Source: Macrostomum hystrix (Eukaryota > Animalia > Platyhelminthes). Taken from it: 64,000 bases of DNA. Below, in pieces: positions 11,716 to 61,681 of the stretch. The translations under genes and the position numbers were made by a program. The stretch covers positions 10,106,001 through 10,170,000 of the forward strand of contig CATNEN010000007.1 of NCBI GenBank assembly GCA_950097015.1. The letters run 5' to 3'. The notes beneath the pieces were generated by a model, which was given only the letters and a program-made list of their open reading frames with translations, did no database searches and was not told the DNA's origin. Position 1 is the first letter of the stretch. The number at the start of each line of letters is the position of its first letter.

Positions 11716-12097
11716 CATAGAACTAATTGCTAACAAATCATAAGCGATTCCTCAATTTTTTGAAATTTCTTTTTTTTATGTATTTGAATGAATAGCGAGC
11801 GAAATTAAAATAAGCGTATATTCATATCCTCTCATAGCATTATATTTAAGCTCGATTAAGTGAATAGCTGCGGAGAGAAAATTCCAGAAAAGAATATACT
11901 ATAGTATAAGCTCATGGAAGACAACATGGAAAAAATATCTATTTGAGGCATGATAGAATCACATGCATATTAGCTTATCAGCTTATACAGCCTAGCAGGT
12001 ATTATAGTCGAATTGTTCGAAAAGAGTTGCCACCTGGACCTACTGAAACTAAGTACTTGTTCAAAATTTTGTCACGATTCTTACGAGCGTAGATTCA

Positions 12098-12200
12098 TTT
12101 GAAAATAGCTGAATATTAATTTGGTCATTTATTTAATTACAGGGACAACTAAAACCCTCCAGAGAGGGTTTGACCAAATGAATATTCAGCTATTTTCAAA
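12098..12200. repeat. 30-bp inverted repeat (29/30 match) with 43-nt spacer
   Basis: TTTGAAAATAGCTGAATATTAATTTGGTCA (12098-12127) pairs with TGACCAAATGAATATTCAGCTATTTTCAAA (12171-12200). Confidence 0.9.
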
Positions 12201-12242
12201 TTTTCAAAGTTTGGTTATTAATGCTAATTCTTCACGAAAATA

Positions 12243-12337
12243 TGCGACAATGTGTAAGTGTGTAATGCGACAATGTGTAAGTGTGTAATGCGACAATGTG
12301 TAAGTGTGTAATGCGACAATGTGTAAGTGTGCGACAA
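12243..12337. repeat. 23-bp tandem repeat (TGCGACAATGTGTAAGTGTGTAA) x4
   Basis: Directly visible. Confidence 0.9.
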
Positions 12338-12373: not shown

Positions 12374-15300
12374 TCATATTTTTTCACTTCTCGCCTTGCA
12401 AGCTCCTTTGTCCCTTGTTGGGATTGTCAGTTGCAGTTCTTTCAATGTCAGGGCAACACTCTGATAGAACAGATTCGTCTGAAATTTTATGAGAAGCGGC
12501 GGTCTGAATGAATGAGCGCGAAAAAAATTGGCTCGAAATTTTCGAGGCAAACTCACATCCTTCATCATAATGGCTTGGACCCTGTCGCAGGCTATACGGT
12601 GGCTGCCGATGACCCTCTGGTGGCACCGGATCAGCCGCATCAACAGGCTCCTGTCTCTACAGAACTCCAGCGTCGTCATGAGCTCCTGCACATCGAGTTT
12701 TTCTGCTTCGAGAGCCTCATCAAACCACATCTTGGCAGTGGCGGGGTCTACGATGCCCAGGTCTAAACTGAGGCTCCTTAGCAATGCTTGAAAGTTTAAA
12801 TACCGCCAGTGATTGTACACAGTCTCTGAGGGGAAGCACTGCTCAAAGAACTTGTTCACAAAGTCCAAGGAAAGATAGTCGCTGCACTCAAAGCAGAATT
12901 TCCATGTGGAGTTTTGAGTATTCATGAGCTGCTGCAGCACATCGTGCTCCGATGGGTTCGGCAGGCAAGGAAGAAAGCTCATGACTTGATCGTCTCGCCT
13001 TTGCACTGCACACTTGGCAACCTCCTGTGCTTTTTCCTTCTGGCCATGTCTCAGATGGGCCAGGATCGCCAGGCTCTGCCTAGCAGCAACTGCACAGTCC
13101 GGAAGAGCATTCAGACCGGCCAGCGTGTCGACTAAGCAGAAGTTCTCACGACCACCGACTGTCAAAAGAGCTGACCTCACAGCGTCGTACACTTCGTGGA
13201 ATTCGAGCTGCTGTTGCTCGGAGCCTGCCGTTGCAGCTGGACTCCTTGCTGCAGCAGTCGGCTTTGGCTTCAGGATTGGCAAAATGAGAAACGGGTGAAA
13301 CTGGAAGCTGTCGCTCCCAACTAGAGGTCGCAGGCTTCTTTTGTATCGCTGAAGGATTTGAGAAAGTCCGCTCAGAACCTGTTTCAAAGCATCCTTAATG
13401 CCTTCCTTGCCTGTGTGATCCTTTTTCAGATACAACCATGCGTCTCTGAGGAAGAAGTGCCTCATGCACTTATCACTGCCCGGCTCATCTTCAAGACATC
13501 TCAGCAACCTGTGCAGCGCATTTCTCGCTAAATCCACCAGACTGGACTGTTTCCATTCACATGCTGGCGTTTCATCCAGCATGTAGAAAATCAGGTTCTT
13601 GACAACGTACGTTTTGAGACCTCGAGCCCTGTGAGACACGACCTGTTTAACGAGGAACTTGACGATAATAAAGAGTTGCCCTTGAATTTTTTTCAGACTT
13701 TGCATCAGCTTCCGTTCCAGGAATGTTGTGCTCAGCCTCAGCAACTGTCCATCCTTGCCGGGAGGAGACGCTGCAACCAGGTGTCCCGTCGAGTTCTTCA
13801 GCACCGTCCTGAGGTCTTCCAGGACAGTAGCCGGGATGAAGCTCCTGTGTGTTGGCTCCAGTACTTCGATTCTCGGGTAGCAACAGCAGCGGTAGGCCTT
13901 AACGAAATCGATCGCGGGTCTGACGCTCGATCTCCGGTAGACCATGGCCGGATTCGATGCTGGTGAAAAATTCAAATCGGGTTCTGGTGGCTAGTGTGGA
14001 GACTACAGCAGACAAAAGCAAACAGAACCCACCGAATCCGCTGGCTGTCACGTGTCCATCATGATACTCCACATTGTGATTGGCTTGTACGGCACCGCTT
14101 TGGCTGCGGCAGTCAACACTGACTTCGCCAGCGGCGACGATGTGAAAGGACTCGGCAGGATCAGTGAAGATGTGGGTGAGGTCGATGTCTGAGTCGTCAT
14201 CGATTTCGCCGTTGATCCGAGAGAGGCAGCTGCCCCAGCCCTCAGCAAAGCTGCCTACCATGTGCAGTTCGCTAGTTCTGAACTCGCCGAAATCCAGTCG
14301 TCTAGTCAGCACCAGCTGCAGGACCCGGGCCAGTACAGACTGGTACCGAGCTCTGCGCTGCGTGATCCCGCAGGCGACCATTGCGGAATGCAGCTCGGTG
14401 CTGAGCTCGCTATCCGACGGCAAAATTCTTAGAAAGCGGACGGGAGACTTCAAATTAAAGTTTGCTAACGATTTCAATTGATTAATCTGGTATTATTTTT
14501 CGATAATTTGGAATTATGGATCGGAATTCATTGTTTGTATAATAATAATATGAACCGTTTTGTATGCACAGTTAAAATTGCTAAGAGCAGAAAGTACGGA
14601 GTAGTACTAAACTGAGTAGTTTATTTTAGAAATAGCGCAACTGGTTTGAGTCGGACTAGCTGACACTAGCAACAGCGAGCTAGGAGAAGAAAGGACGACT
14701 GGCGATGTGTGCGTCAATTATAGAGACAAGGCATGGAGAACTTGCAATGCACAAAGCCTCATTATGCCGCATAATGCAGCTTTCGTTTCCAAAAATTAAG
14801 GGTCCGTCTACAATCCGTCTACGCGAGTTTTTGACACACACACAGACTTTGTTTTGCAACTCACGACTCTTCGTTCTCTGTTGTCTTTGGCGCATTCAGT
14901 TGCTTCGCGTGGTCGCGGACGTTCTTGATAATGTCGATTGCATCATCGGCGCCGACTGCTGTCGCTGGCAGGCGCAGGATTTTCTCGAGCTCGTATTCAG
15001 GGGCCAGGCGCATTATCTTGAGCAGGATTTCCGCACGGCCAAAGCAGCTGGCGATAGCCGCTGGACTCAGGCCGAAGCTGTTCTCTGCATCGAGATGCGA
15101 TCCTGCGCAAAGCAGAGCCTCCACGGCGCCTTGACCCGGGCCGCTGAATAGGGCAGCGGCGTGCAACGGTGTGCAGCCGTCCGCAGTGGTGAGCGTCAGT
15201 TCTGCTCCAGCATCAAGCAGCACCTGGACAGCCTCAGCATGCCCACCGAACGCGGCAACATGCAGCGGCGTCTCTCCTCGATGGTCTCTCGCATTTTTCT

Positions 15301-15748
15301 CGGCTTTGCCCTCGAACAACAGAATTTTCAGCATTTCAGCGTGTCCAGCAGCTGCGGCAGCGTGCGTCGCCGACCAGCCCGTGTCAAGGCATTTCACGTT
15401 GCAGTCAGCGTCCTCTTTGACCAGGTGGCTGGCCACCTCGTTGTGTCCGCACCCGGCTGCAACGAAGAGAGCTGTTCGGCCGGACTTGGAGGCTGTGTTT
15501 GGGTTGGCCTTTCCAATCGTGAGAAGCTGCTGGAGCGCCTCAGAGTGAGCATTCGCTGCGGCCCAGTGGGTCGCCGCCCAGCCGTGGCTGTCGGGCCGAT
15601 TGACCCACTCGGGCTGGCCGCAGCTGGATGCCAGCAGCACCAGTCTGGTCACCTCAGCTGAGTGTCCTCGGGCTGCCGCCAAGTGCAGGAGCGTCTTGCC
15701 CTCATGGTCTACCTTGGAGAGCTCTTCCTCGCTGCCTCGGTGACTCAT
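12374..15748 (-). CDS. Ankyrin-repeat + cGAS/Mab-21-like nucleotidyltransferase (cGLR) fusion protein, at least 3 exons, about 900-960 aa
   Basis: Exon 15748-14865 (about 7 ankyrin repeats) ends at TC|GTGAGT (phase 2). It joins acceptor TTTCTAAG| at 14427 in frame. Exon 14427-14033 carries VGSFAEGWG...DDDSDIDLT. A 49-nt GT-AG intron (14032-13984) restores the frame into exon 13983-12374, which has AIDFVKAY, LRLSTTFLERKLM, LKTYVVKNLIFYMLD and CMRHFFL (Mab-21 fold). A GTGAGT donor at 12556 may end this exon earlier. Confidence 0.85.
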
Positions 15749-16280
15749 CTAAGACAAGCTGGCGGAGCTGCTTTACCTACAGAAAGGTTTCAAAGTAGCA
15801 ATTTTTTTTGCATTTATTTCCCTGTTTACGTATTTTTTCTAGACATCTCGGACTCTTTTTCTCCTTTTCCCTAGTGGAATTTCCGCGGAATTACCTTATT
15901 ATTTTATCCGTTACACATTAGTGCAATTTTCAGAGCCCACTATACATCTCAACTAGCTCTCACCTTGGTTAGGGAGGGGTGCGTCCTCTTTGTGCCGACA
16001 GCGCAGTACATTCCGCGAAAGGTACAAACAATGCAATTTAAAACTGCGGTTATTTCTAAGAATATTTCTAAGCCTTTCGTTTTTAAGGGTTTAACCACGA
16101 GCATTAAAAGTCAGATAACAATAGAAATGCTTGGCCTCCTAGACCTAAAAATCTGTATAAAGTCAGTTTAAAAAACATCTCAGTTGCGGAGAGTTTCACG
16201 CGCAGTCGAGGGCTGCCAGCTGGATACACGTGACAACTCGAGCTGAGCATCGCACGTAAGCACTGCACGAGTTGCGGGCG

Positions 16281-16634
16281 CAGCAGGGCTGTGGGTACTG
16301 GCACACATGCATCACTTAGTGACAGTAGACACGCAGCAAGCGACTGGGCAACTCTGCCTAGATTTCGCTGACTTCTGAGAACAAATGGACACAGATACGA
16401 AATGTAATGTATGCAGGCACACACTCACATGTGTGTACATCTGCCCTGACTTTCTCATCGTCAGGCAGTGTACACTTTCACTGTGCCCTGAAGGTTCGCC
16501 CTCGAGGGCGTAAATTGCATGACAAGCCTCCACAATGCCTTCTCTCCGTGGCTAGGCTCCAAATAAATGTGGCCTCGCCATGGAATGACCTTGGTGCGAG
16601 AGGCAAACGCGTTAATCGCTCCGGCACTCACCCC
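16281..16634 (-). mobile_element. tRNA-derived SINE, copy A (diverged)
   Basis: The reverse complement aligns by eye with the copies at 33968-34316 and 43941-44244: head GGGGTGAGTGCCGGAGCGATTAACGCGTTTGCCTCTCGCACCAAGG, core GGCACAGTGAAAGTGTACACTGCCTGACG and 3' CAGCCCTGCTG. Confidence 0.8.
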
Positions 16635-21530: not shown

Positions 21531-22237
21531 CTGGCCAGGTCCTACGCTCACTAACTGGGCATTGCGGCTGCAGAATTTTAAACTCATTTTATACAAGGTA
21601 CCGCTTTGCTTTTTGCTTAGCATTGCAAGAAAAGCCGATGTCACTCACTACTGCGAGCGGAACTCCTTAAGGATGAAAATCCAGCTGGGGCTCTTATCGC
21701 CTGATTTCCACCATGTGAATCTTGCGCAAGCCTGTGCCATGTTTGCATCAGGCAGATTGTTCTGGAATTGTGACATTGCCCTCTCCTACTTGCCACATTA
21801 TTTTTTTGACACTTTAGTTGCCACGGACAACGGAGAGTTGCCCTAATAAATAAGATAGCTGGGCCGCAGCTTTCCACACTTTAAATATTTTATGTGAAGA
21901 GCTCCACCATTCAACGAATTCCATCGGGCGAGCCGGGCCGGTGATGCTTCTTTTTTGTTCAATAACTTTTCCAACTTGAGTCCTGCATTTCTTAGCTGAG
22001 TTCCAGACACTGAACATGCGTAGCTCTTTTTTAAAGTTTTGCTTGTTTGCTCCTCCTGTCAGTGTCATTGTCATGTCATTGTTGAAATGTAGAATCTACT
22101 ACTGAAGTGTCGACCGAAAGGTGATTGCTCATTACAACTGCTCTCAGTTGGCGGAAGCCATGCCTCACTCTAGAATGCTGTGAACAATGTCTACTTTTTA
22201 TTTTGTGTGTCTGCCACTACTGAATCTGTGTCTCCAA

Positions 22238-23350
22238 CTCTCTGCTCTCCCTCCATTCTCTCTGCTCTCCATCCATTCTCTCTGCTCTCCCTCCATTCTC
22301 TCTGCTCTCCATCCATTCTCTCTGCTCTCCCTCCATTCTCTCTGCTCTCCATCCATTCTCTCTGCTCTCCATCCATTCTCTCTGCTCTCCCTCCATTCTC
22401 TCTGCTCTCCATCCATTCTCTCTGCTCTCCCTCCATTCTCTCTGCTCTCCATCCATTCTCTCTGCTCTCCCTCCATTCTCTCTGCTCTCCATCCATTCTC
22501 TCTGCTCTCCCCTCCATTCTCTCTGCTCTCCATCCATTCTCTCTGCTCTCCCTCCATTCTCTCTGCTCTCCCTCCATTCTCTCTGCTCTCCCCTCCATTC
22601 TCTCTGCTCTCCCCTCCATTCTCTCTGCTCTCCCCTCCATTCTCTCTGCTCTCCCTCCATTCTCTCTGCTCTCCATCCATTCTCTCTGCTCTCCCTCCAT
22701 TCTCTCTGCTCTCCCTCCATTCTCTCTGCTCTCCCCTCCATTCTCTCTGCTCTCCCTCCATTCTCTCTGCTCTCCCTCCATTCTCTCTGTTCTCCCCTCC
22801 ATTCTGTCTGCTCTCCCCTCTATTCTGTCTGCTCTCCCCTCCATTCTGTCTGCTCTCCCCTCTATTCTGTCTGCTCTCCCCTCTATTCTGTCTGCTCTCC
22901 CCTCCATTCTGTCTGCTCTCCCCTCCATTCTCTCTGCTCTCCCTCCATTCTCTCTGTTCTCCCCTCCATTCTGTCTGCTCTCCCCTCTATTCTGTCTGCT
23001 CTCCCCTCCATTCTGTCTGCTCTCCCCTCTATTCTGTCTGCTCTCCCCTCTATTCTGTCTGCTCTCCCCTCCATTCTGTCTGCTCTCCCCTCTATTCTGT
23101 CTGCTCTCCCCTCCATTCTGTCTGCTCTCCCCTCCATTCTGTCTGCTCTCCCCTCTATTCTTTGTTGAACTCAGTTTTTTGATGTCAGTACTGGCCCTCC
23201 ATTCTCTCTGCTCTGCCCTCCATTCTGTCTGCTCTCCCTCCATTCTCTCTGCTCTCCCTCCATTCTCTCTGCTCTGCCCTCCATTCTCTCTGCTCTGCCC
23301 TCCATTCTCTCTGCTCTCCCTCTATTCTCTCTGCTCTCCCTTCATTCTCA
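22238..23350. repeat. 20/21-bp pyrimidine-rich minisatellite (CTCCATTCTCTCTGCTCTCC[C])n
   Basis: About 1.1 kb array upstream of LITAF; it generates stop-free ORFs in several frames. Confidence 0.95.
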
Positions 23351-23470
23351 TTGAGGGGTCAATTAACAGTTTAATTCAATGTAGGTCAATCAGAGTGCAT
23401 GGAATTTTCGCTAAGCTTAACTCGGCACTCCATGTTGAATCATTGTCCATTTCCGCGTCCTTCCAGCCAA

Positions 23471-23917
23471 ATGGCTTCGCCAGTGCCATCCGCGCCGGAG
23501 CCGCCGCCGCCCTACTACAGCACCGAGAACATGGATGACCCCCTGCTGGGCAAGGAGGAACCATTATCCAACAGCCACCCGCCACCTCAGTACTCGGTCA
23601 CTCAGTGCTCAGTACTGGCCAACGCGCCGCTGACCGCCGTGATCTCGCAGCCGCTGCCGCAGCACAGCATACTGGCGATTCACAATCCGCTGGGCTTCGA
23701 GTCCGGCATGGCGATGTGCCCGAAGTGTCAGCAATTAGTGAACACCGTGGTCAGCTATGAATCCGGCCACCTGAGCTGGCTGCTGTGCACTGGCATGTGC
23801 CTGGTCGGCCTCAACCTAGGCTGCTGCTTCATCCCGTTCTGCCTTGAAGTCTGCAAGGATGCCGTGCACGAGTGTCCGATCTGCGAGACTGTGCTGCACC
23901 GCCAGAACCGCATCTGA
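23471..23917 (+). CDS. LITAF: LITAF/SIMPLE-domain protein, single coding exon, 148 aa
   Basis: MASPVPSAPEPPPPYY carries PSAP and PPxY motifs. The zinc knuckles CPKC and HECPIC flank the hydrophobic segment WLLCTGMCLVGLNLGCCFIPF. Acceptor TTCCAG lies 4 nt before the ATG. LITAF vs CDIP1 not resolved. Confidence 0.9.
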   Translation: MASPVPSAPEPPPPYYSTENMDDPLLGKEEPLSNSHPPPQYSVTQCSVLANAPLTAVISQPLPQHSILAIHNPLGFESGMAMCPKCQQLVNTVVSYESGHLSWLLCTGMCLVGLNLGCCFIPFCLEVCKDAVHECPICETVLHRQNRI

Positions 23918-24045
23918 ACAGCCCGCTGGTTTCAGCGAAGCGTTGAGACAACTAGACTGTATTTTTTTTCGCGAGAAAATTCTAGAATTTCTATGTTAAA
24001 CTCATTTATGTTCACGTGCTTGCGTTTGCATTATATACCAGAACA

Positions 24046-37707: not shown

Positions 37708-40700
37708 ATGTCGGCCGCCGCCGTTCCGCCGTCAGCGCAGCAGCCGCAGACAGCTGCCCTGTACGCCGGCTATGACGAGGACCTGTCAGAGAATCCGTTC
37801 TTTCTGAGGCTTAAGACCGACGCGGCCTCCATCTACAACAGTGCGGCCGCCAAAGGATGGCTGGTAAGGCGTTGCATCTTTGGGCGAATGTCTGTTGATT
37901 GGGGTGTCTTTTCTGTGGATTTAGGTGTTTTTGATGTGGATTTAGGTGTCTTTGATGTGGATTTGGGTGTTTTTGATGTGGATTTGGGTGTCTTTGATGT
38001 GGATTTGGGTGTCTTTGTAGATTTGTGTGTCTTTGATGTGGATTCGGGAGTCTTTGGGTGTCTTTGATGTGGATTTGGGTGTCTTTGATGTGGATTTGGG
38101 TGTCTTTGATGTGGATTCGGGAGTCTTTGGGTGTCTTTGATGTGGATTTGGGTGTCTTTGATGTGGATTTGGGTGTCTTTGATGTGGATTCGGGTGTCTT
38201 TGGGTGTCTTTGATGTGGATTTGGGTGTCTTTGATGTGGATTTGGGTGTCTTTGGGTGTTTTTTATATGGATTTGGGTGTCTTTGGGTGTCTTCGATGTG
38301 GATTTGGGTGTCTTTGGGTGTCTTTGATGTGGATTTGGGTGTCTTTGGGTGTCTTTGATGTGGATTTGGGTGTCTTTGATGTGGATTTGGGTGTCTTTGA
38401 TGTGGATTCGGGAGTCTTTGGGTGTCTTTGATGTGGATTTGGGTGTCTTTGATGTGGATTTGGGTGTCTTTGATGTGGATTCGGGTGTCTTTAAGTGTCT
38501 TTGATGTGGATTTGGGTGTCTTTGATGTGGATTCGGGTGTCTTTGGGTGTCTTTGATGTGGATTTGGGTGTCTTTGGGTGTTTTTTATATGGATTTGGGT
38601 GTCTTTGGGTGTCTTTGATGTGGATTTGGGTGTCTTTGGGTGTCTTCGATGTGGATTTGGGTGTCTTTGGGTGTCTTTGATGTGGATTTGGGTGTCTTTG
38701 ATGTGGATTTGGGTGTCTTTGATGTGGATTTGGGTGTCTTTGATGTGGATTTGGGTGTCTTTGGGTGTCTTTGATGTGGATTTGGGTGTCTTCGATGTGG
38801 ATTTGGGTGTCTTTGGGTGTCTTTGATGTGGATTTGGGTGTCTTTGATGTGGATTTGGGTGTCTTTGATGTGGATTTGGGTGTCTTTGATGTGGATTCGG
38901 GAGTCTTTGGGTGTCTTTGATGTGGATTTGGGTGTCTTTGATGTGGATTTGGGTGTCTTTGATGTGGATTCGGGTGTCTTTGGGTGTCTTTGATGTGGAT
39001 TTGGGTGTCTTTGATGTGGATTTGGGTGTCTTTGGGTGTTTTTTATATGGATTTGGGTGTCTTTGGGTGTCTTCGATGTGGATTTGGGTGTCTTTGGGTG
39101 TCTTTGATGTGGATTTGGGTGTCTTTGGGTGTCTTTGATGTGGATTTGGGTGTCTTTGATGTGGATTTGGGTGTCTTTGATGTGGATTCGGGAGTCTTTG
39201 GGTGTCTTTGATGTGGATTTGGGTGTCTTTGATGTGGATTTGGGTGTCTTTGATGTGGATTCGGGTGTCTTTAAGTGTCTTTGATGTGGATTTGGGTGTC
39301 TTTGATGTGGATTCGGGTGTCTTTGGGTGTCTTTGATGTGGATTTGGGTGTCTTTGATGTGGATTTGGGTGTCTTTGGGTGTTTTTTATATGGATTTGGG
39401 TGTCTTTGGGTGTCTTCGATGTGGATTTGGGTGTCTTTGGGTGTCTTTAATGTGGATTTGGGTGTCTTTGGGTGTCTTTGATGTGGATTTGGGTGTCTTT
39501 GATGTGGATTTGGGTGTCTTTGATGTGGATTCGGGAGTCTTTGGGTGTCTTTGATGTGGATTTGGGTGTCTTTGATGTGGATTTGGGTGTCTTTGATGTG
39601 GATTCGGGTGTCTTTAAGTGTCTTTGATGTGGATTTGGGTGTCTTTGATGTGGATTCGGGTGTCTTTGGGTGTCTTTGATGTGGATTTGGGTGTCTTTGG
39701 GTGTTTTTTATATGGATTTGGGTGTCTTTGGGTGTCTTCGATGTGGATTTGGGTGTCTTTGGGTGTCTTTGATGTGGATTTGGGTGTCTTTGGGTGTCTT
39801 CGATGTGGATTTGGGTGTCTTTGGGTGTCTTTGATGTGGATTTGGGTGTCTTTGATGTGGATTTGGGTGTCTTTGATGTGGATTTGGGTGTCTTTGATGT
39901 GGATTTGGGTGTCTTTGGGTGTCTTTGATGTGGATTTGGGTGTCTTCGATGTGGATTTGGGTGTCTTTGGGTGTCTTTGATGTGGATTTGGGTGTCTTCG
40001 ATGTGGATTTGGGTGTCTTTGGGTGTCTTTGATGTGGATTTGGGTGTCTTTGATGTGGATTTGGGTGTCTTTGATGTGGATTTGGGTGTCTTTCAGTGTC
40101 TTTGATGTGGATTTGGGTGTCTTTCAGTGTCTTTGATGTGGATTTGGGTGTCTTTGATGTGGATTTGGGTGTCTTTGATGTGGATTTGGGTGTCTTTGGG
40201 TGTCTTTGATGTGGATTTAGGTGTCTTTGGGTGTCTTCGATGTGGATTTGGGCGTCTTTGGGTGTCTTTGATGTGGATTTGGGTGTCTTTGATGTGGATT
40301 TGGGTGTCTTTGATGTGGATTTGGGTGTCTTTCAGTGTCTTTGATGTGGATTTGGGTGTCTTTGATGTGGATTTGGGTGTCTTTGGGTGTCTTCGATGTG
40401 GATTTGGGTGTCTTTGGGTGTCTTTGATGTGGATTTGGGTGTCTTTGATGTGGATTTGGGTGTCTTTCAGTGTCTTTGATGTGGATTTGGGTGTCTTTGA
40501 TGTGGATTTGGGTGTCTTTGGGTGTCTTTGATGTGGATTTTGGTGTCTTTGGGTGTCTTCGATGTGGATTTGGGCGTCTTTGGGTGTCTTTGATGTGGAT
40601 TTGGGTGTCTTTGATGTGGATTTGGGTGTCTTTGATGTGGATTTGGGTGTCTTTGATGTGGATTTGGGTGTCTTTGATGTGGATTTGGGTGTCTTTGATG

Positions 40701-43700
40701 TGGATTTGGGTGTCTTTCAGTGTCTTTGATGTGGATTTGGGTGTCTTTGATGTGGATTTGGGTGTCTTTGGGTGTCTTCTATGTGGATTTGGGTGTCTTT
40801 GGGTGTCTTTGATGTGGATTTGGGTGTCTTTGATGTGGATTTGGGTGTCTTTCAGTGTCTTTGATGTGGATTTGGGTGTCTTTGATGTGGATTTGGGTGT
40901 CTTTGATGTGGATTTGGGTGTCTTCGATGTGGATTTGGGTGTCTTTGGGTGTCTTTGATGTGGATTTGGGTGTCTTCGATGTGGATTTGGGTGTCTTTGG
41001 GTGTCTTTGATGTGGATTTGGGTGTCTTTGGGTGTCTTTGATGTGGATATGGGTGTCTTTGATGTGGATTTGGGTGTCTTTGATGTGGATTTGGGTGTCT
41101 TTGATGTGGATTTGGGTGTCTTTGGGTGTCTTCGATGTGGATTTGGGTGTCTTTGGGTGTCTTTGATGTGGATTTGGGTGTCTTTCAGTGTCTTTGATGT
41201 GGATTTGGGTGTCCTTGATGTGGATTTTGTGTCTTTGATGTGGATTTGGGTGTCTTTGATGTGGATTTGGGTGTCTTTGATGTGGATTTGGGTGTCTTTG
41301 GGTGTCTTTGATGTGGATTTGGGTGTCTTTGATGTGGATTTGGGTGTCTTTGATGTGGATTTGGGTGTCTTTCTGTGGATTTGGGTGTCTTTTAGGTGGA
41401 TTTGGGTGTCTTTCTGTGGATTTTGTGTCTTTTAGGTGGATTTGGGTGTTCTATTAATTTGTGTGCCTTCCTTTAGGATAGGGAGTCATATGGCGGGCTA
41501 GGGTGTTCGCGGATGCTAAAGGGCATCTGAAAATGACATTTGTGACTTTAATTCCCGACTCCATCCACCGCCAGGTGTGCGTGCCCCGTCTGGGCAGCTT
41601 CTCAGATGAGACGCCTCCCGACGAGAACGACTTCCTCAGCCACATCCTGGTGGCGGTGAGCGTGGATGACGGATCCTACAAGACCCTGAAGAATCAGGTC
41701 AGGAAGAATACTGGTGTGTCAGGGAGGATACTGGGGTGTCAGGAAGAATACTGCTGTGTCAGGGAGGATACTGGGTGTCAGGAAGAATACTGGGTGTCAG
41801 AAAGAATACTGGTGTGTCAGGGAGGATACTGGGTGTCAGGAAGAATACTGGTGTGTCAGGGAGGATACTGGGTGTCAGGAAGAATACTGGTGTGTCAGGG
41901 AGGATACTGGGGTGTCAGGGAGGATACTGGGGTGTCAGGTACGGTACTGGTGTTTCAGGGAGGATACTGGGGTGTCAGAAAGAATACTGGTGTGTCAGGG
42001 AGGATACTGGGTGTCAGGAAGAATACTGGTGTGTCAGGGAGGATACTGGCTGTCAGGAAGAATACTGGTGTGTCAGGGAGGATACTGGGTGTCAGGAAGA
42101 ATACTGGTGTGTCAGGGAGGATACTGGTGTGTCAGGGAGGATACTGGGGTGTCAGGTACGGTACTGGTGTTTCAGGGAGGATACTGGGGTGTCAGTAAGA
42201 ATACTGCTGTGTCAGGGAGGATACTGGGTGTCACGAAGAATACTGGTGTGTCAGGGAGGATACTGGGTGTCAGGAAGAATACTGGTGTGTCAGGGAGGAT
42301 ACTGGGTGTCAGGAAGAATACTGGTGTGTCAGGGAGGATACTGGGGTGTCAGGTACGGTACTGGTGTTTCAGGGAGGATACTGGTGTTTCAGGGAGGATG
42401 CTGGGGTGTCAGGGAGGATACTGGGGTGTCAGGGAGGATACCGAGGTTTCAGGTAGGGTACTAAGGTTTCAGGGAGGATACTGGGGTGTCAGGTAGGGTA
42501 CTGGGGTTTCAGGGAGGATACTGGGGATATCAGCACAGACCAATGGTAGCAAAAGAAACAGAAAGTCGTTAACGTTTTCGACCCTCAGCGAGTGCAGCAG
42601 GTCGGCCGCGCCCTCCGCACAGGCGAAGGCTTCGAGCACGCCAAGGAGGCGCTGATCCTGTTTGACGAGCTGTTCGTGCTGGACTCCGGCCACCGTCACC
42701 GGGTGCTGTGCCTGAGCGAGCCGCTGACCGGGCCGCCAGCCGAGCCGGCCACCCCGCTGACTGGCGGCTCGGAGCCCTGGGGCGGCGGCCCGGTGTTCAC
42801 GCTGTCCAGCCTGGACGACTGCGCCCAGCTGCTGTTCGGCAAGGCCTCGCGCGAGACCCGCCTGCGCCAGCGGCTGGAGTCGGCCATCGCCGCCTTCTGC
42901 CACGGTCTCAGCTGCACGGACTTCGAGAGCGTCGACCAGTGCGTGCGGGCCGTGCAGGATCTGTACTCTTCCTGCCTCCACTCGGCGCTAAAAGATTCCC
43001 GGATTGTGAGTAGCTTCCGCCAGCTCTGGTACTGTTCAGTCCATGCTACTTGGACTGCTCAATCCCTCCTACTTGTTGGACTGCTCAATCCATTCTTCTT
43101 GTTGGACTGCTCAATCCATTCTTCTTGTTGGACTGCTCAATCTGTCCTACTTGTTTGACTGCTCAATCCATTCTTCTTGTTGGACTGCTCGATCCCTCCT
43201 ACTTGTTGAACTGCTCAATCCATCCTACTTGTTAGACTGCTCAATCTCTCCTACTTGTTTGACTGCTCAATCCATCCTACTTATTAGACTGCTCAATCCC
43301 TCCTACTTGCTTGACTGCTCAATCCATCCTACTTGTTTGACTGCTCAATCCATCCTACTTGTTTGACTGCTCAATCCATCCTACTTGTTTGACTGCTCAA
43401 TCCATTCTAATTATTGTGCTGCTCACACCGGTGGAATAACTTAAAACAGGTGACAAGAAATTGCATTGAAGCGAGCTCCGATTCAGCCAAATGCTCAATC
43501 TCAAATATCTGGTCATTTAAAACGCTTATCGGAAATTTCGAAACTTGTTTGAGCATTAGACGGAGCCGCGCCAAAGCACTTTAAAATGCATTTTATTAAG
43601 CTTTTCTGTCATCTACTCATGCTCAGGACTACGTGAGCTCACTTAGCGTGAAATTAAACTTCGTTTTTTTAATTGCGTCACGACTTCTTTGCTTTGAACT

Positions 43701-57640: not shown

Positions 57641-58324
57641 CTGAATTAGCTTCTTCGGGAACCACAAAAAATCAACAAGTATCTCATTAACTCGTTTCCT
57701 CTCGTAAGGCAAAAGAAAAACAAATTAGCTTTGAAAATTGAAATAGATCAATCGGCCCACAATCTCCGCCCATTCGATTGTTCATCGATGGTCATTAAAC
57801 ATTCGTGCCCCAGCGGCTGTTTTGTCCCTACAAAGCGAATTGGTTCGGCCGTCACCAGCCGCGCTCGCAGGCCAAGCGGAATGGCAAACAGAGGATAACA
57901 AAAGCCCCCCCATTCCCTAATTAGAGGCCAACTGGGAGCCGCCTCTCGTCATGATCTAAAAGCAGATTTTTCAAAACTCATCCCATCGAAGCTTCAGGCC
58001 ACCGCCATCAGCACGCAAACCTCAGTTGGGCCTGCAGAGCGGGCACGGAAGGCCGGAGACACAGCCTTGAATTTTCCTCCGAGTGTCTCAGATTCATTCT
58101 TTGGCTCGTCAATCGACTTCTTTTTGGTCTGCGGGTCCGGCCAGTTGGATTCAACAAGAGCTTCGCATTCACAGGCGGTCATGCGCAGCTCCCAGCTCCT
58201 TGGTGCCGCAGTCCAAATAAAAAAGCAATTTAACCCGAGCACTGCGCGTCACACACAACTGCTTCTGCAGACTTCTTGCCTGCTTTCTTCAGATGGGCGA
58301 CTGGAAGGATTCGGCCTGGATTGG

Positions 58325-59730
58325 ATAGTAGAGTGGTGGGATTTGAGAGTAGACTGATGGGATTTGAGAGCAGACTGATGGGATTTAAGAGCAGACTGAT
58401 GGGATTTTAGAGTAGAGTGATGGGATTTGAGAGTAGACTGACGGGATTTGAGAGCAGACTGATGGGATTTAAGAGCAGACTGATGGGATTTAAGAGTAGA
58501 GTGATGGGATTTGAGAGTAGACTGATGGGATTTGAGAGCAGACTGATGGGATTTAAGAGCAGACTGATGGGATTTTAGAGTAGAGTGATGGGATTTGAGA
58601 GTAGACTGACGGGACTTAAGAGCAGAATGATGGGATTTAAGAGCAGACTGATGGGATTTTAGAGTAGAGTGGTGGGATTTGAGAGTAGACTGATGGGATT
58701 TGAGAGCAGACTGACGGGATTTAAGAGCAGACTGATGGGATTTTAGAGTAGAGTGATGGGATTTGAGAGTAGAGTGATAAGATTTGAGAGTAGACTGATG
58801 GGATTTGAGACTTGAGTGATGGGATTTGAGAGTATAGTGATAAGATTTGAGAGTGAGCGATGGGATTTCAAAGTAGAGTGATCGGATTAGAGATTAGAGT
58901 GATGGGATTTGAGAGTAGAGTGATGGGATTTGAGAGTAGAGTGATAAGATTTGAGAGTGAGCGATGGGATTTCAAAGTAGAGTGATCGGATTAGAGATTA
59001 GAGTGATGGGATTTGAGAGTAGAGTGATGGGATTTGAGAGTAGAGTGATCGGATTAGAGATTAGAGTGATGGGATTTGAGAGTAGACTGATGGGATTTGA
59101 GAGCAGACTGACGGGATTTAAGAGCAGACTGATGGGATTTTAGAGTAGAGTGGTGGGATTTGAGAGTAGACTGATGGGATTTGAGAGCAGACTGACGGGA
59201 TTTAGGAGCAGACTGATGGGATTTTAGAGTAGAGTGATGGGATTTGAGAGTAGAGTGATAAGATTTGAGAGTAGACTGATGGGATTTGAGACTTGAGTGA
59301 TGGGATTTGAGAGTATAGTGATAAGATTTGAGAGTGAGCGATGGGATTTCAAAGTAGAGTGATCGGATTAGAGATTAGAGTGATGGGATTTGAGAGTAGA
59401 GTGATGGGATTTGAGAGTAGAGTGATAAGATTTGAGAGTGAGCGATGGGATTTCAAAGTAGAGTGATCGGATTAGAGATTAGAGTGATGGGATTTGAGAG
59501 TAGAGTGATGGGATTTGAGAGTAGAGTGATCGGATTAGAGATTAGAGTGATGGGATTTGAGAGTAGAGTGATGGGATTTGAGAGTAGAGTGATGGGATTT
59601 GAGAGTAGAGTGACGGGATTTGAGAGTAGAGTGATGGGATTTGAGAGTAGAGTGATGGGATTTGAGACTTGAGTGATAGGATTTGAGAGTAGAGTGATGG
59701 GATTTGAGAGTAGAGTGGTGGGATTTGAGA
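58325..59730. repeat. 21-bp minisatellite (GAGTGATGGGATTTGAGAGTA)n
   Basis: About 1.4 kb. Confidence 0.95.
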
Positions 59731-61681
59731 GTTGACGGCACCTCAGCATTGCAGACTGTGTGCTCAGCTAAAGCATCTTTAACTTCACCCTGATTGCTAG
59801 GTTGGCCATCATATCGCATCTCAGACTCAGTTGGTTGAATCCAATCGCAGCAGCAGCAGCAGCAGCAGCAGTCATCCAGTTGATTCTCCTCCGCCGGAAG
59901 AAACTTGAACCCTCGCCACTCCGGCCTCAATCTCTCCGGCCCGCTCGATCGAGTTACTCCCCCGCCGATGGAATCAATCAGCAGCGCTGAGCAGGGACTG
60001 AGCAGGGACTGAGCAGTGACTGTCATTCGAGTCTCAGGGTGGGGGGGAAGTTTTGTTGCGCGCTCGAGATGTCAGCTTTCGCTCCCATTGCTGAGGATTT
60101 TTCCTTGGGGAAAAATTGCTCGAGCCACTTTATTTTTTGACACCCCAGCTGCAATCTAGCGGCGCAGCCACCCCCGCCAGGCCAAGTGAGATGTTTCTGA
60201 GCTGCCACACCCGAGCCAGCACGGGCCGCGTTTTAGAATTGCAAAACAAAACTGCTCAGCTTTGTTTGAGATCCCCGGGCTGCGGTGCTCGCGCATTCTT
60301 ATAGCTTCAGATTTGACAGACGGGTGTGAAACTAAATTTAACAACGCTGCGAGACAATGCAACAGGCAGCGCTTTGAGCGCGCGGATGATCGGCGCTGCA
60401 AGCAAAAACTAAATTTGATTTTCATGGTGCTTTGCGGGCCCCGCATCTCGGCAGCAGCAGCAGCACCAACGGCGGCGGTGGCGGCAGTCGGCTCATTTGT
60501 CAATAGCATCGGGTCGACACTTAACAAGCTTGCTGCTCCTAAAAGACTGAGAGACAGAGACATTGAAAAAATCTGAAAGGTGAAAAAAAGCAGAAATTTT
60601 TCGCGACTATATTTCTGTACTGGCAGCGCCACCGAACCGTGTCCGCGATCCCGCCCACCCCAGCCTCCGCCCGTCTCACCTGCCGCAGCCTCCACCACTT
60701 GTAGTTTTGATTGTTTTAATTTAACAAACATTGCCCCCCTCATAGATGTGATGCTTCTTTGTCTGTCACCTGATCTGCTCAGTCATTTTAGGCCCCCGAG
60801 TGATCAGGGAGTCGACTGCTCAGAGTCAGCTTTGCAAACTCAGCAATCAACATTCAATTGGCTGGTATCACCTGGGTGGGGCTTGCGCCCGCAAGTCATT
60901 TCGTGGAGTGGGGAGGCATTTATTATGCGATTTTGTTCCCCTGAAGAAGAGCCCGTTGAGTCCTCGTCATCCCGGCCGCACCCCCCAGCCCCCCGGAACT
61001 CATGGAGCCAAAACTCGGCACGGAGGGCCGGGGCCGGCCCGCCATTGGTTGTCGGGCGGGAGGGCGGTGGGGCGGGTGTGAGTAGGGTCTACAAGGAGGT
61101 GTCTCAGGCGACCAAAACTCGTTCGTGCGCAGCTCCATTCAACAAGTAAAGTAAGCAGCCCGACTGCACCGGCGACTCGTCAAGAGCGGCAACAGCAGCG
61201 GCAGCAGCAGCAGCAACTCAAAAGTTTCCTTTTGCGCCACAGTTTTCACTTGTTCTCAAGCTCCGCTCTCACTTATTCACTCCGGCCCTCGCGCTCGCTC
61301 TCGGCTTCTTCAGGCAAGGTGAGTGCTTCCTCATTAGCTGGCCGTGTTGCGTGAGACTCTTTGATCCCCAGCTGCTGCTGCTGCTGATGGGCGGGGCTCC
61401 CAGCGGGCCCAGAAACTTGGAGCCGGCGAAGGCGGAGTTTGGAGAGGGTTGAGGCTGGGAAGAGAGTTTCAAGCCAGCAGAAGAAGCAGAGGATCAGCGG
61501 GGATCTTTGGCTTGTACAGGGGAGAATATTACTGGGATCAAATTACCCCCCCAAGAAAGGAAAAAACTCACAAGCATGTCTGGGAGCGCGGCGGAGTTTG
61601 TTGAGGGGGGCTGGCGAAACAACTTTGCCAACCCGTGCCAAGGATAAACTTTTCCACTCCAGCGATGTCTCTAACCCTGAG

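Follow-up and report, generated by a model that had tools for sequence, protein, structure and literature searches.

A 64,000-nucleotide stretch of the Macrostomum hystrix genome (hereafter the window) contains, on its minus strand at positions 12374-15748, an expressed gene that encodes ankyrin repeats fused to a nucleotidyltransferase of the cGAS/Mab-21 family. Three open reading frames (ORFs) in this interval are exons of this single, spliced, four-exon gene. Seven ankyrin repeats stand at the N-terminus of the product, followed by a short linker, a complete nucleotidyltransferase of the cGAS/Mab-21 fold and a family-specific C-terminal domain of ~260 residues. The explanation that we favour, with a probability of about 0.6, takes these parts together: a real, expressed four-exon gene uniting ankyrins, a cGAS-like enzyme and the C-terminal domain, whose product is a signalling cGAS-like receptor (cGLR) belonging to a Macrostomum clade of such receptors.

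Gene structure and transcripts

The three ORFs run from 15748 to 14861 (295 amino acids), from 14477 to 13899 (192 amino acids) and from 13975 to 12374 (533 amino acids). A preliminary description of this DNA had assembled them into one gene, with ankyrin repeats fused to a cGAS/Mab-21-family nucleotidyltransferase on a spliced, expressed message, and transcript contigs that join the ankyrin exon to exon 2 bear this out. The contigs come from three runs (X1, X2 and X3) of a single study, of unrecorded kind. The runs behave like RNA: their contigs are confined to exons, and the segments skipped at the joints begin with GT and end with AG when read on the minus strand. Contigs cover all four exons, which are in frame and bordered by canonical splice sites, while neither intron 1 nor the downstream DNA at 11800-12107 is covered in any of the three runs. 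The coding sequence (15748-12374) comprises 884 + 395 + 1403 + 102 = 2784 nucleotides (nt), or 928 codons, close in size to that of the best homologue, P0001 (936 amino acids). The product has 928 amino acids, as compared with 962 in the earlier gene model.

The message begins with a 5′ untranslated leader of at least 15749-15806, as contigs of X2 and X3 continue unbroken to 15768 and 15806, and an in-frame TAG (15751-15749) stands immediately 5′ of the ATG at 15748. The coding part of exon 1 (14865-15748, contig-covered) holds the seven ankyrin repeats and the linker, and ends with two bases of a split Ser codon. The apparent stop of the ankyrin ORF is a splice donor, TC|GTGAGT at 14864, and intron 1 (14428-14864; 437 nt, GTGAGT...AG, phase 2) leads to exon 2 at 14427, exactly as had been predicted. 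One contig each of X1 and X3 joins 14865 directly to 14427 and skips the 437 nt. The short sides of these joints (29 and 22 nt) are below the 31-nt bridging rule; both joints are exact and independent.

These joints bear on whether the ankyrins and the enzyme might be separate genes, or the locus a pseudogene, one decaying copy among the many of a large family, as could be suspected from the stop codon that closes each genomic ORF and from the stop codons in several paralog matches. With the exon 1-exon 2 joint found at the predicted junction in two runs, four covered, in-frame exons with canonical splice sites, and a total length similar to that of full-length homologues, we regard this as very improbable. 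Separate ankyrin and nucleotidyltransferase messages, which the preliminary description had named as evidence that would overturn it, are contradicted by the same joints.

Where does intron 2 end? Its donor, G|GTGGGT at 14032, had been placed correctly, while the acceptor had been put at 13984, giving an intron of 49 nt. That shorter intron is in frame, but adds eight residues that are absent from every homologue. The actual acceptor lies at 13960, and intron 2 (13960-14032) is 73 nt long (GTGGGT...CAG, phase 1). We prefer this acceptor because of a contig end, the gap-free fit to homologues and the introns of paralogs. First, a 228-nt contig matches 13751-13959 and ends there with 19 letters unplaced, and the acceptor tttttcaccag adjoins this end at 13961-13960. 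Second, the 73-nt model creates the junction codon G|CA (Ala) and the protein sequence ...HVTASGF-A-SNPAMVYRRSSVRPAIDF..., and the SGF-A-SNPA junction has the same length as, and a near-identical sequence to, those of the Macrostomum lignano homologues (GFASNPA, GFATNPA), with no gap. Finally, among 20 paralog loci sampled for upstream ankyrin, catalytic residues and intron position, a phase-1 GT..AG intron occurs at the exact position of intron 2 in 16, and in all 12 where the alignments span both exon ends. These counterparts usually split a G|CN Ala codon and are often 72-88 nt long.

Exon 3 (12557-13959, contig-covered) is followed by intron 3 (12479-12556; 78 nt, GTGAGT...CAG, in frame), which had been read as coding sequence. 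It is skipped by the joint 12478|12557 in X1 and X2, with sides of 89 and 74 nt, respectively, and 0 mismatches. The coding part of exon 4 (12374-12478) supplies the final 34 codons and the stop TGA at 12376-12374. Transcript depth extends 3′ into the depth bin 12108-12261. Within the 3′ untranslated region, 43 nt past the stop codon, lies a tandem repeat with a 23-nt unit, perfect over its 3.9 copies (12242-12331; Tandem Repeats Finder, 100% matches, score 180).

Domains, active site and fold

The ankyrin part is recognised by Pfam on exon 1 (Ank_2, 2e-35; Ank, 2.2e-33 with six stretches), and seven repeats of the 33-residue type can be counted by eye at residues ~16-250. On exon 3, the Pfam model Mab-21_C exceeds its cut-off of 24.1 with a score of 29.5 bits, so that two of the expected domain matches, Ank and Mab-21_C, were obtained. 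The other features that had been read from the sequence (GSFAEG, DSDID, AIDF, TYVVKNLIFY and CMRHFF) are all present in the translation, as are the approximately seven repeats.

Exon 2 (14033-14427) encodes the spine helix and N-lobe of the nucleotidyltransferase, as judged from its sequence and the M. lignano alignment, and carries ...MVGSFAEGWGS...DDDSDIDL..., with the catalytic Gly-Ser at 14255-14250 and Asp-Ile-Asp at 14189-14181. Exon 3 supplies the third catalytic Asp (13909-13907, in PAIDF), the remaining cGAS-like domain, including Mab-21_C at ~13654-13418, and the C-terminal domain from ~13250. The active-site pattern is GS-x20-DhDh-x63-hDh: MVGS is followed by 20 residues and DIDL, and then by 63 residues (junction codon included) and IDF. 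The cGLR motif that Li et al. 2023 used allows 8-20 residues between Gly-Ser and [DE]h[DE]h and 50-90 residues from there to h[DE]h, and the spacing of Gly-Ser, DxD and third Asp in the window protein falls inside these limits. Every catalytic residue is present, rather than an incomplete active site of the MAB21L1/2/3 type.

We examined the fold by profile and structure comparisons. At E <= 1e-3, the family profile matches 835 proteins in a set of 1.84 billion representatives; the sampled matches, with E from 1e-12 to 1e-19, carry Pfam Mab-21 and/or Mab-21_C, mostly both, and come from other lophotrochozoans, a bivalve and a tubeworm among them. The profile aligns with proteins of the Mab-21 + Mab-21_C type from about the strand of the third Asp onwards, and the N-lobe with Gly-Ser and DxD is recognised by structure only. 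Of the two regions in which Li et al. 2023 look for sequence homology in a cGLR, the nucleotidyltransferase core and the C-terminal helix bundle, the bundle is the one that Pfam detects here, through Mab-21_C. Against PDB sequences the same profile gives marginal matches to cGAS and cGLR1 (E 0.03-0.1), at which level sequence alone is not decisive. A single-sequence search of the PDB with exon 3 returned VIN3 matches at chance level, which we discarded.

An AlphaFold2 model was made for the M. lignano homologue P0006 from a 76-row alignment, and reached a predicted local distance difference test score (pLDDT) of 93.4 and a predicted template-modelling score of 0.93. As had been anticipated, this homologue model matches cGAS and cGLR structures: in Foldseek against the PDB, the top matches are cGAS and oyster Cv-cGLR1 (E ~1e-8, probability 1.0), and VIA-align gives Z scores of 20.4 for human cGAS (267 residues, root-mean-square deviation 3.4), 20.0 for MB21D2 and 19.1 for Cv-cGLR1. 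The VIA-align matches span model residues 9-340, which is the entire catalytic domain. Beyond it, at residues 340-604, the model shows with confidence a further domain that is mostly helical and could be assigned to no known fold. The C-terminal domain matches no Pfam family, and its ESM Atlas look-alikes, which would make it DUF5717, are sub-threshold (0.81) and were not credited.

Human and mouse cGAS, human MB21D2 and oyster Cv-cGLR1 share the catalytic fold of the P0006 model (Z 19-20 over ~265-288 residues) and the order of Gly-Ser, DxD and third Asp found in the window protein. They differ from it in having only 16-20% identity, a shorter loop between Gly-Ser and DxD, and neither the added ankyrins nor the C-terminal domain. 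Moreover, the window protein does not have the N-terminal disordered DNA-binding tail, unlike the solved cGAS-type structures. The cGAS-like domain is mildly basic (48 Lys + Arg versus 39 Asp + Glu), and its C-lobe has an isoelectric point of 9.9; it may therefore bind nucleic acids. Judged by its motif and by the modelled fold, the protein agrees with the definition of a cGLR except at one non-catalytic motif position.

Several points weigh against a signalling cGLR expressed from this gene. The three runs carry no RNA label, and no contig in them spans intron 2. The fold assignment rests on P0006, which is 36% identical to the window protein. Exon 2 by itself has no significant Pfam match, and the Mab-21 N-lobe model, which had been expected there, is unmatched. 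The strict h[QT]GS pattern is also unmatched, as Val precedes Gly-Ser instead of Gln or Thr, and the 20-residue spacer between Gly-Ser and DxD is the longest that the motif allows. No family member has known enzymatic activity, and this includes five screened M. lignano proteins; Macrostomum is nowhere mentioned among the 15 active enzymes in the main text of Li et al. 2023 (PMC9980059).

The unmatched N-lobe, the Val, the long spacer and the screened members with no reported activity would also suit a non-catalytic scaffold of the Mab-21 type, in which the fold and the ankyrins serve for binding, as in MAB21L1/2 or MID49/51, and no nucleotide signal is made. We consider such a scaffold rather unlikely. 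Gly-Ser, DxD and the third Asp are kept in 18 of the 20 sampled paralogs, which are just 30-45% identical overall; the Mab21L1/2/3 group is described as having no predicted functional active site (PMC9980059); and the same genome encodes a family of STING-like receptors. M. lignano proteins that Li et al. 2023 list for their screen likewise have neither Gln nor Thr before Gly-Ser (HVMGS, FILGS).

A Macrostomum family of ankyrin-cGLRs

The nearest kin of the window protein are predicted cGLRs of M. lignano (PAA86972.1 and PAA45980.1 in the list of Li et al. 2023, and the UniProt ANK_REP_REGION / Mab-21 domain proteins P0001, P0003, P0004 and P0006). A search with exon 3 found 19 proteins, mainly from M. 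lignano, the best at 41% identity, and several of these homologues (876-936 amino acids) carry Ank together with Mab-21_C. Five M. lignano members of the family were curated as cGLRs and cloned in a screen of 140 enzymes (Li et al. 2023, PMC9980059); the authors note that a large number of cGLRs showed no activity in vitro, and suggest that the ligand was probably missing. The window protein and the M. lignano cGLRs have in common GSF/YxEGWG, DSDID, PAxD, CCxYP, LRxSTTFLER, QGQLF, GLKTY, LDETP, CMxHFF and FHPF, and the latter also have the C-terminal domain and, in several cases, N-terminal ankyrins. The two sets differ in that they come from different species, at 36-41% identity and with no clear one-to-one orthologue, and in that the window gene has seven ankyrin repeats, whereas its relatives have from none to very long arrays.

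In the M. hystrix genome (220,453,370 bases in 42 contigs), exon 3 has at least 91 scored matches (171 candidates), mostly in open frames; some contain stop codons. The gene had been described as a hidden receptor, which was overstated, as it does not stand alone: it is one of at least 91 paralogs, and the ankyrin-cGLR architecture has already been published. Ankyrin-coding DNA lies upstream on the same strand in 16 of the 20 sampled paralogs, in the order ankyrin, N-lobe exon, core exon. One paralog (L029:2576-5422, plus strand) is an intronless ORF of 948 amino acids, whose hydrophobic N-terminus is followed by ankyrins, cGAS-like enzyme and tail. This single ORF confirms that ankyrin, enzyme and tail belong on one message. 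The L029 paralog is located directly downstream of a retroelement pol/integrase-like ORF (L029:7-1623, plus strand), and may be a retrocopy. As judged from the M. lignano fusions, the 16 of 20 paralogs and L029, the fusion of ankyrins to the enzyme is probably ancestral in the Macrostomum family.

How does this family compare with known fusions? Li et al. 2023 (PMC9980059) described some cGLRs fused to ankyrin or tetratricopeptide-repeat (TPR) modules, and proposed the ankyrins in such fusions as ligand- or protein-interaction modules. Fusions are a minority in that survey, in which 87% of the cGLRs are single-domain proteins. The ankyrin-cGLR fusions of the coral Stylophora pistillata likewise combine a cGLR core with ankyrin repeats (Li et al. 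2023). As compared to these, fusion is the norm in the Macrostomum family, which numbers more than 90 genes, and the conserved C-terminal domain is present in addition.

The window itself holds no second copy of the enzyme. An ORF with a VPS9 domain (44298-45629, plus strand) is followed on the same strand by an ankyrin ORF (48981-50366), and the two (44298-50366) may be one VPS9-ankyrin gene. The ankyrin ORF was considered as a cGLR paralog and rejected as unrelated. Immediately upstream of the cGLR gene, at 16208-16400, raised depth and transcript contigs whose long loose ends fall at 16255, 16310 and 16362 point to a further spliced transcription unit. The blocks 22001-24000, 38001-42000, 46001-48000 and 58001-60000 are extremely skewed in both GC and AT, with a GC skew reaching 0.70, which suggests strand-biased low-complexity sequence.

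STING-like genes and the proposed signalling

A search for paralogs and for STING homologues had been proposed, and paralogs and STING-like genes were found in the genome. With Pfam STING_LBD the genome yields one match, which at 25.6 bits is just under the cut-off of 27, and this is the sole Pfam match of its ORF. The ORF has ~13 paralogs, some of them clustered in tandem on contig 2. The STING-like loci are at C2:8.967-9.105 Mb (L034-L040, L035/L042), C7:13142032, C39:4.228-4.254 Mb and 19158102, and C38:7495203; the copy L035/L042 is broken. In each ORF the STING-like domain is followed by ~120 further residues that form a small alpha/beta unit. A profile from an alignment of paralogs within this genome has 88 matches in the PDB, and all of the 60 listed are STING (best E 2.3e-4). 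In addition, a model of the domain (pLDDT 68) finds only STING structures among its top 50, with template-modelling scores of up to 0.66. The STING-like genes are accordingly predicted, from a model of moderate confidence, to have the fold of the cyclic-dinucleotide-binding domain. By eye, DWASP of the STING-like ORF aligns with EYATP of human STING. No transmembrane exons were identified upstream of the STING-like domains, and a word-based homologue search and the Atlas gave no matches for the STING candidate.

The mechanism that we infer, from ligand and catalysis to the product and the link with the STING-like proteins, would be as follows. The enzyme would be inactive at rest. A ligand would activate it by binding to the ankyrins, to the C-terminal domain or to the basic C-lobe; the ankyrins might in this way act as the sensor of a protein ligand. 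The active enzyme would then turn nucleoside triphosphates into a cyclic di- or oligonucleotide, and this product would be read by the STING-like proteins, whose genes lie elsewhere in the genome.

An active nucleotidyltransferase might instead have another output, such as linear oligonucleotides, as made by OAS, or nucleotides added to a protein or RNA that the ankyrins hold, with no signalling through STING. The fold alone does not determine the product, the conserved C-terminal domain is unique and has no recognisable relatives, and the STING-like genes are unlinked to the locus. The best structural matches, however, are cGAS, MB21D2 and Cv-cGLR1, and neither OAS nor poly(A) polymerase appears in the top 50 of either structure search. 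We therefore regard such an output as improbable, and retain the signalling cGLR as the preferred reading.

Taken singly, the gene is of modest value: it provides a corrected, transcript-supported model and one further member of the family. A wider idea, which we put forward tentatively and consider doubtful as it stands, is that in Macrostomum the ankyrin array, and perhaps the C-terminal domain, supplants nucleic-acid binding, and that the at least 91 ankyrin-cGLRs and the ~13 STING-like genes constitute a repertoire for protein or other non-nucleic-acid ligands, similar to that of the nucleotide-binding leucine-rich-repeat receptors (NLRs). If true, this NLR-like repertoire would belong to a phylum from which, according to reports, cGLR signalling has elsewhere mostly disappeared. 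The activation of cGLRs by ligands other than DNA or RNA is an open problem, and a culturable, genetically tractable flatworm with large families of ankyrin-cGLRs and STING-like proteins would suit the hunt for such ligands. Moreover, Macrostomum could reveal how the pathway persisted in one branch of a phylum that has mostly lost it.

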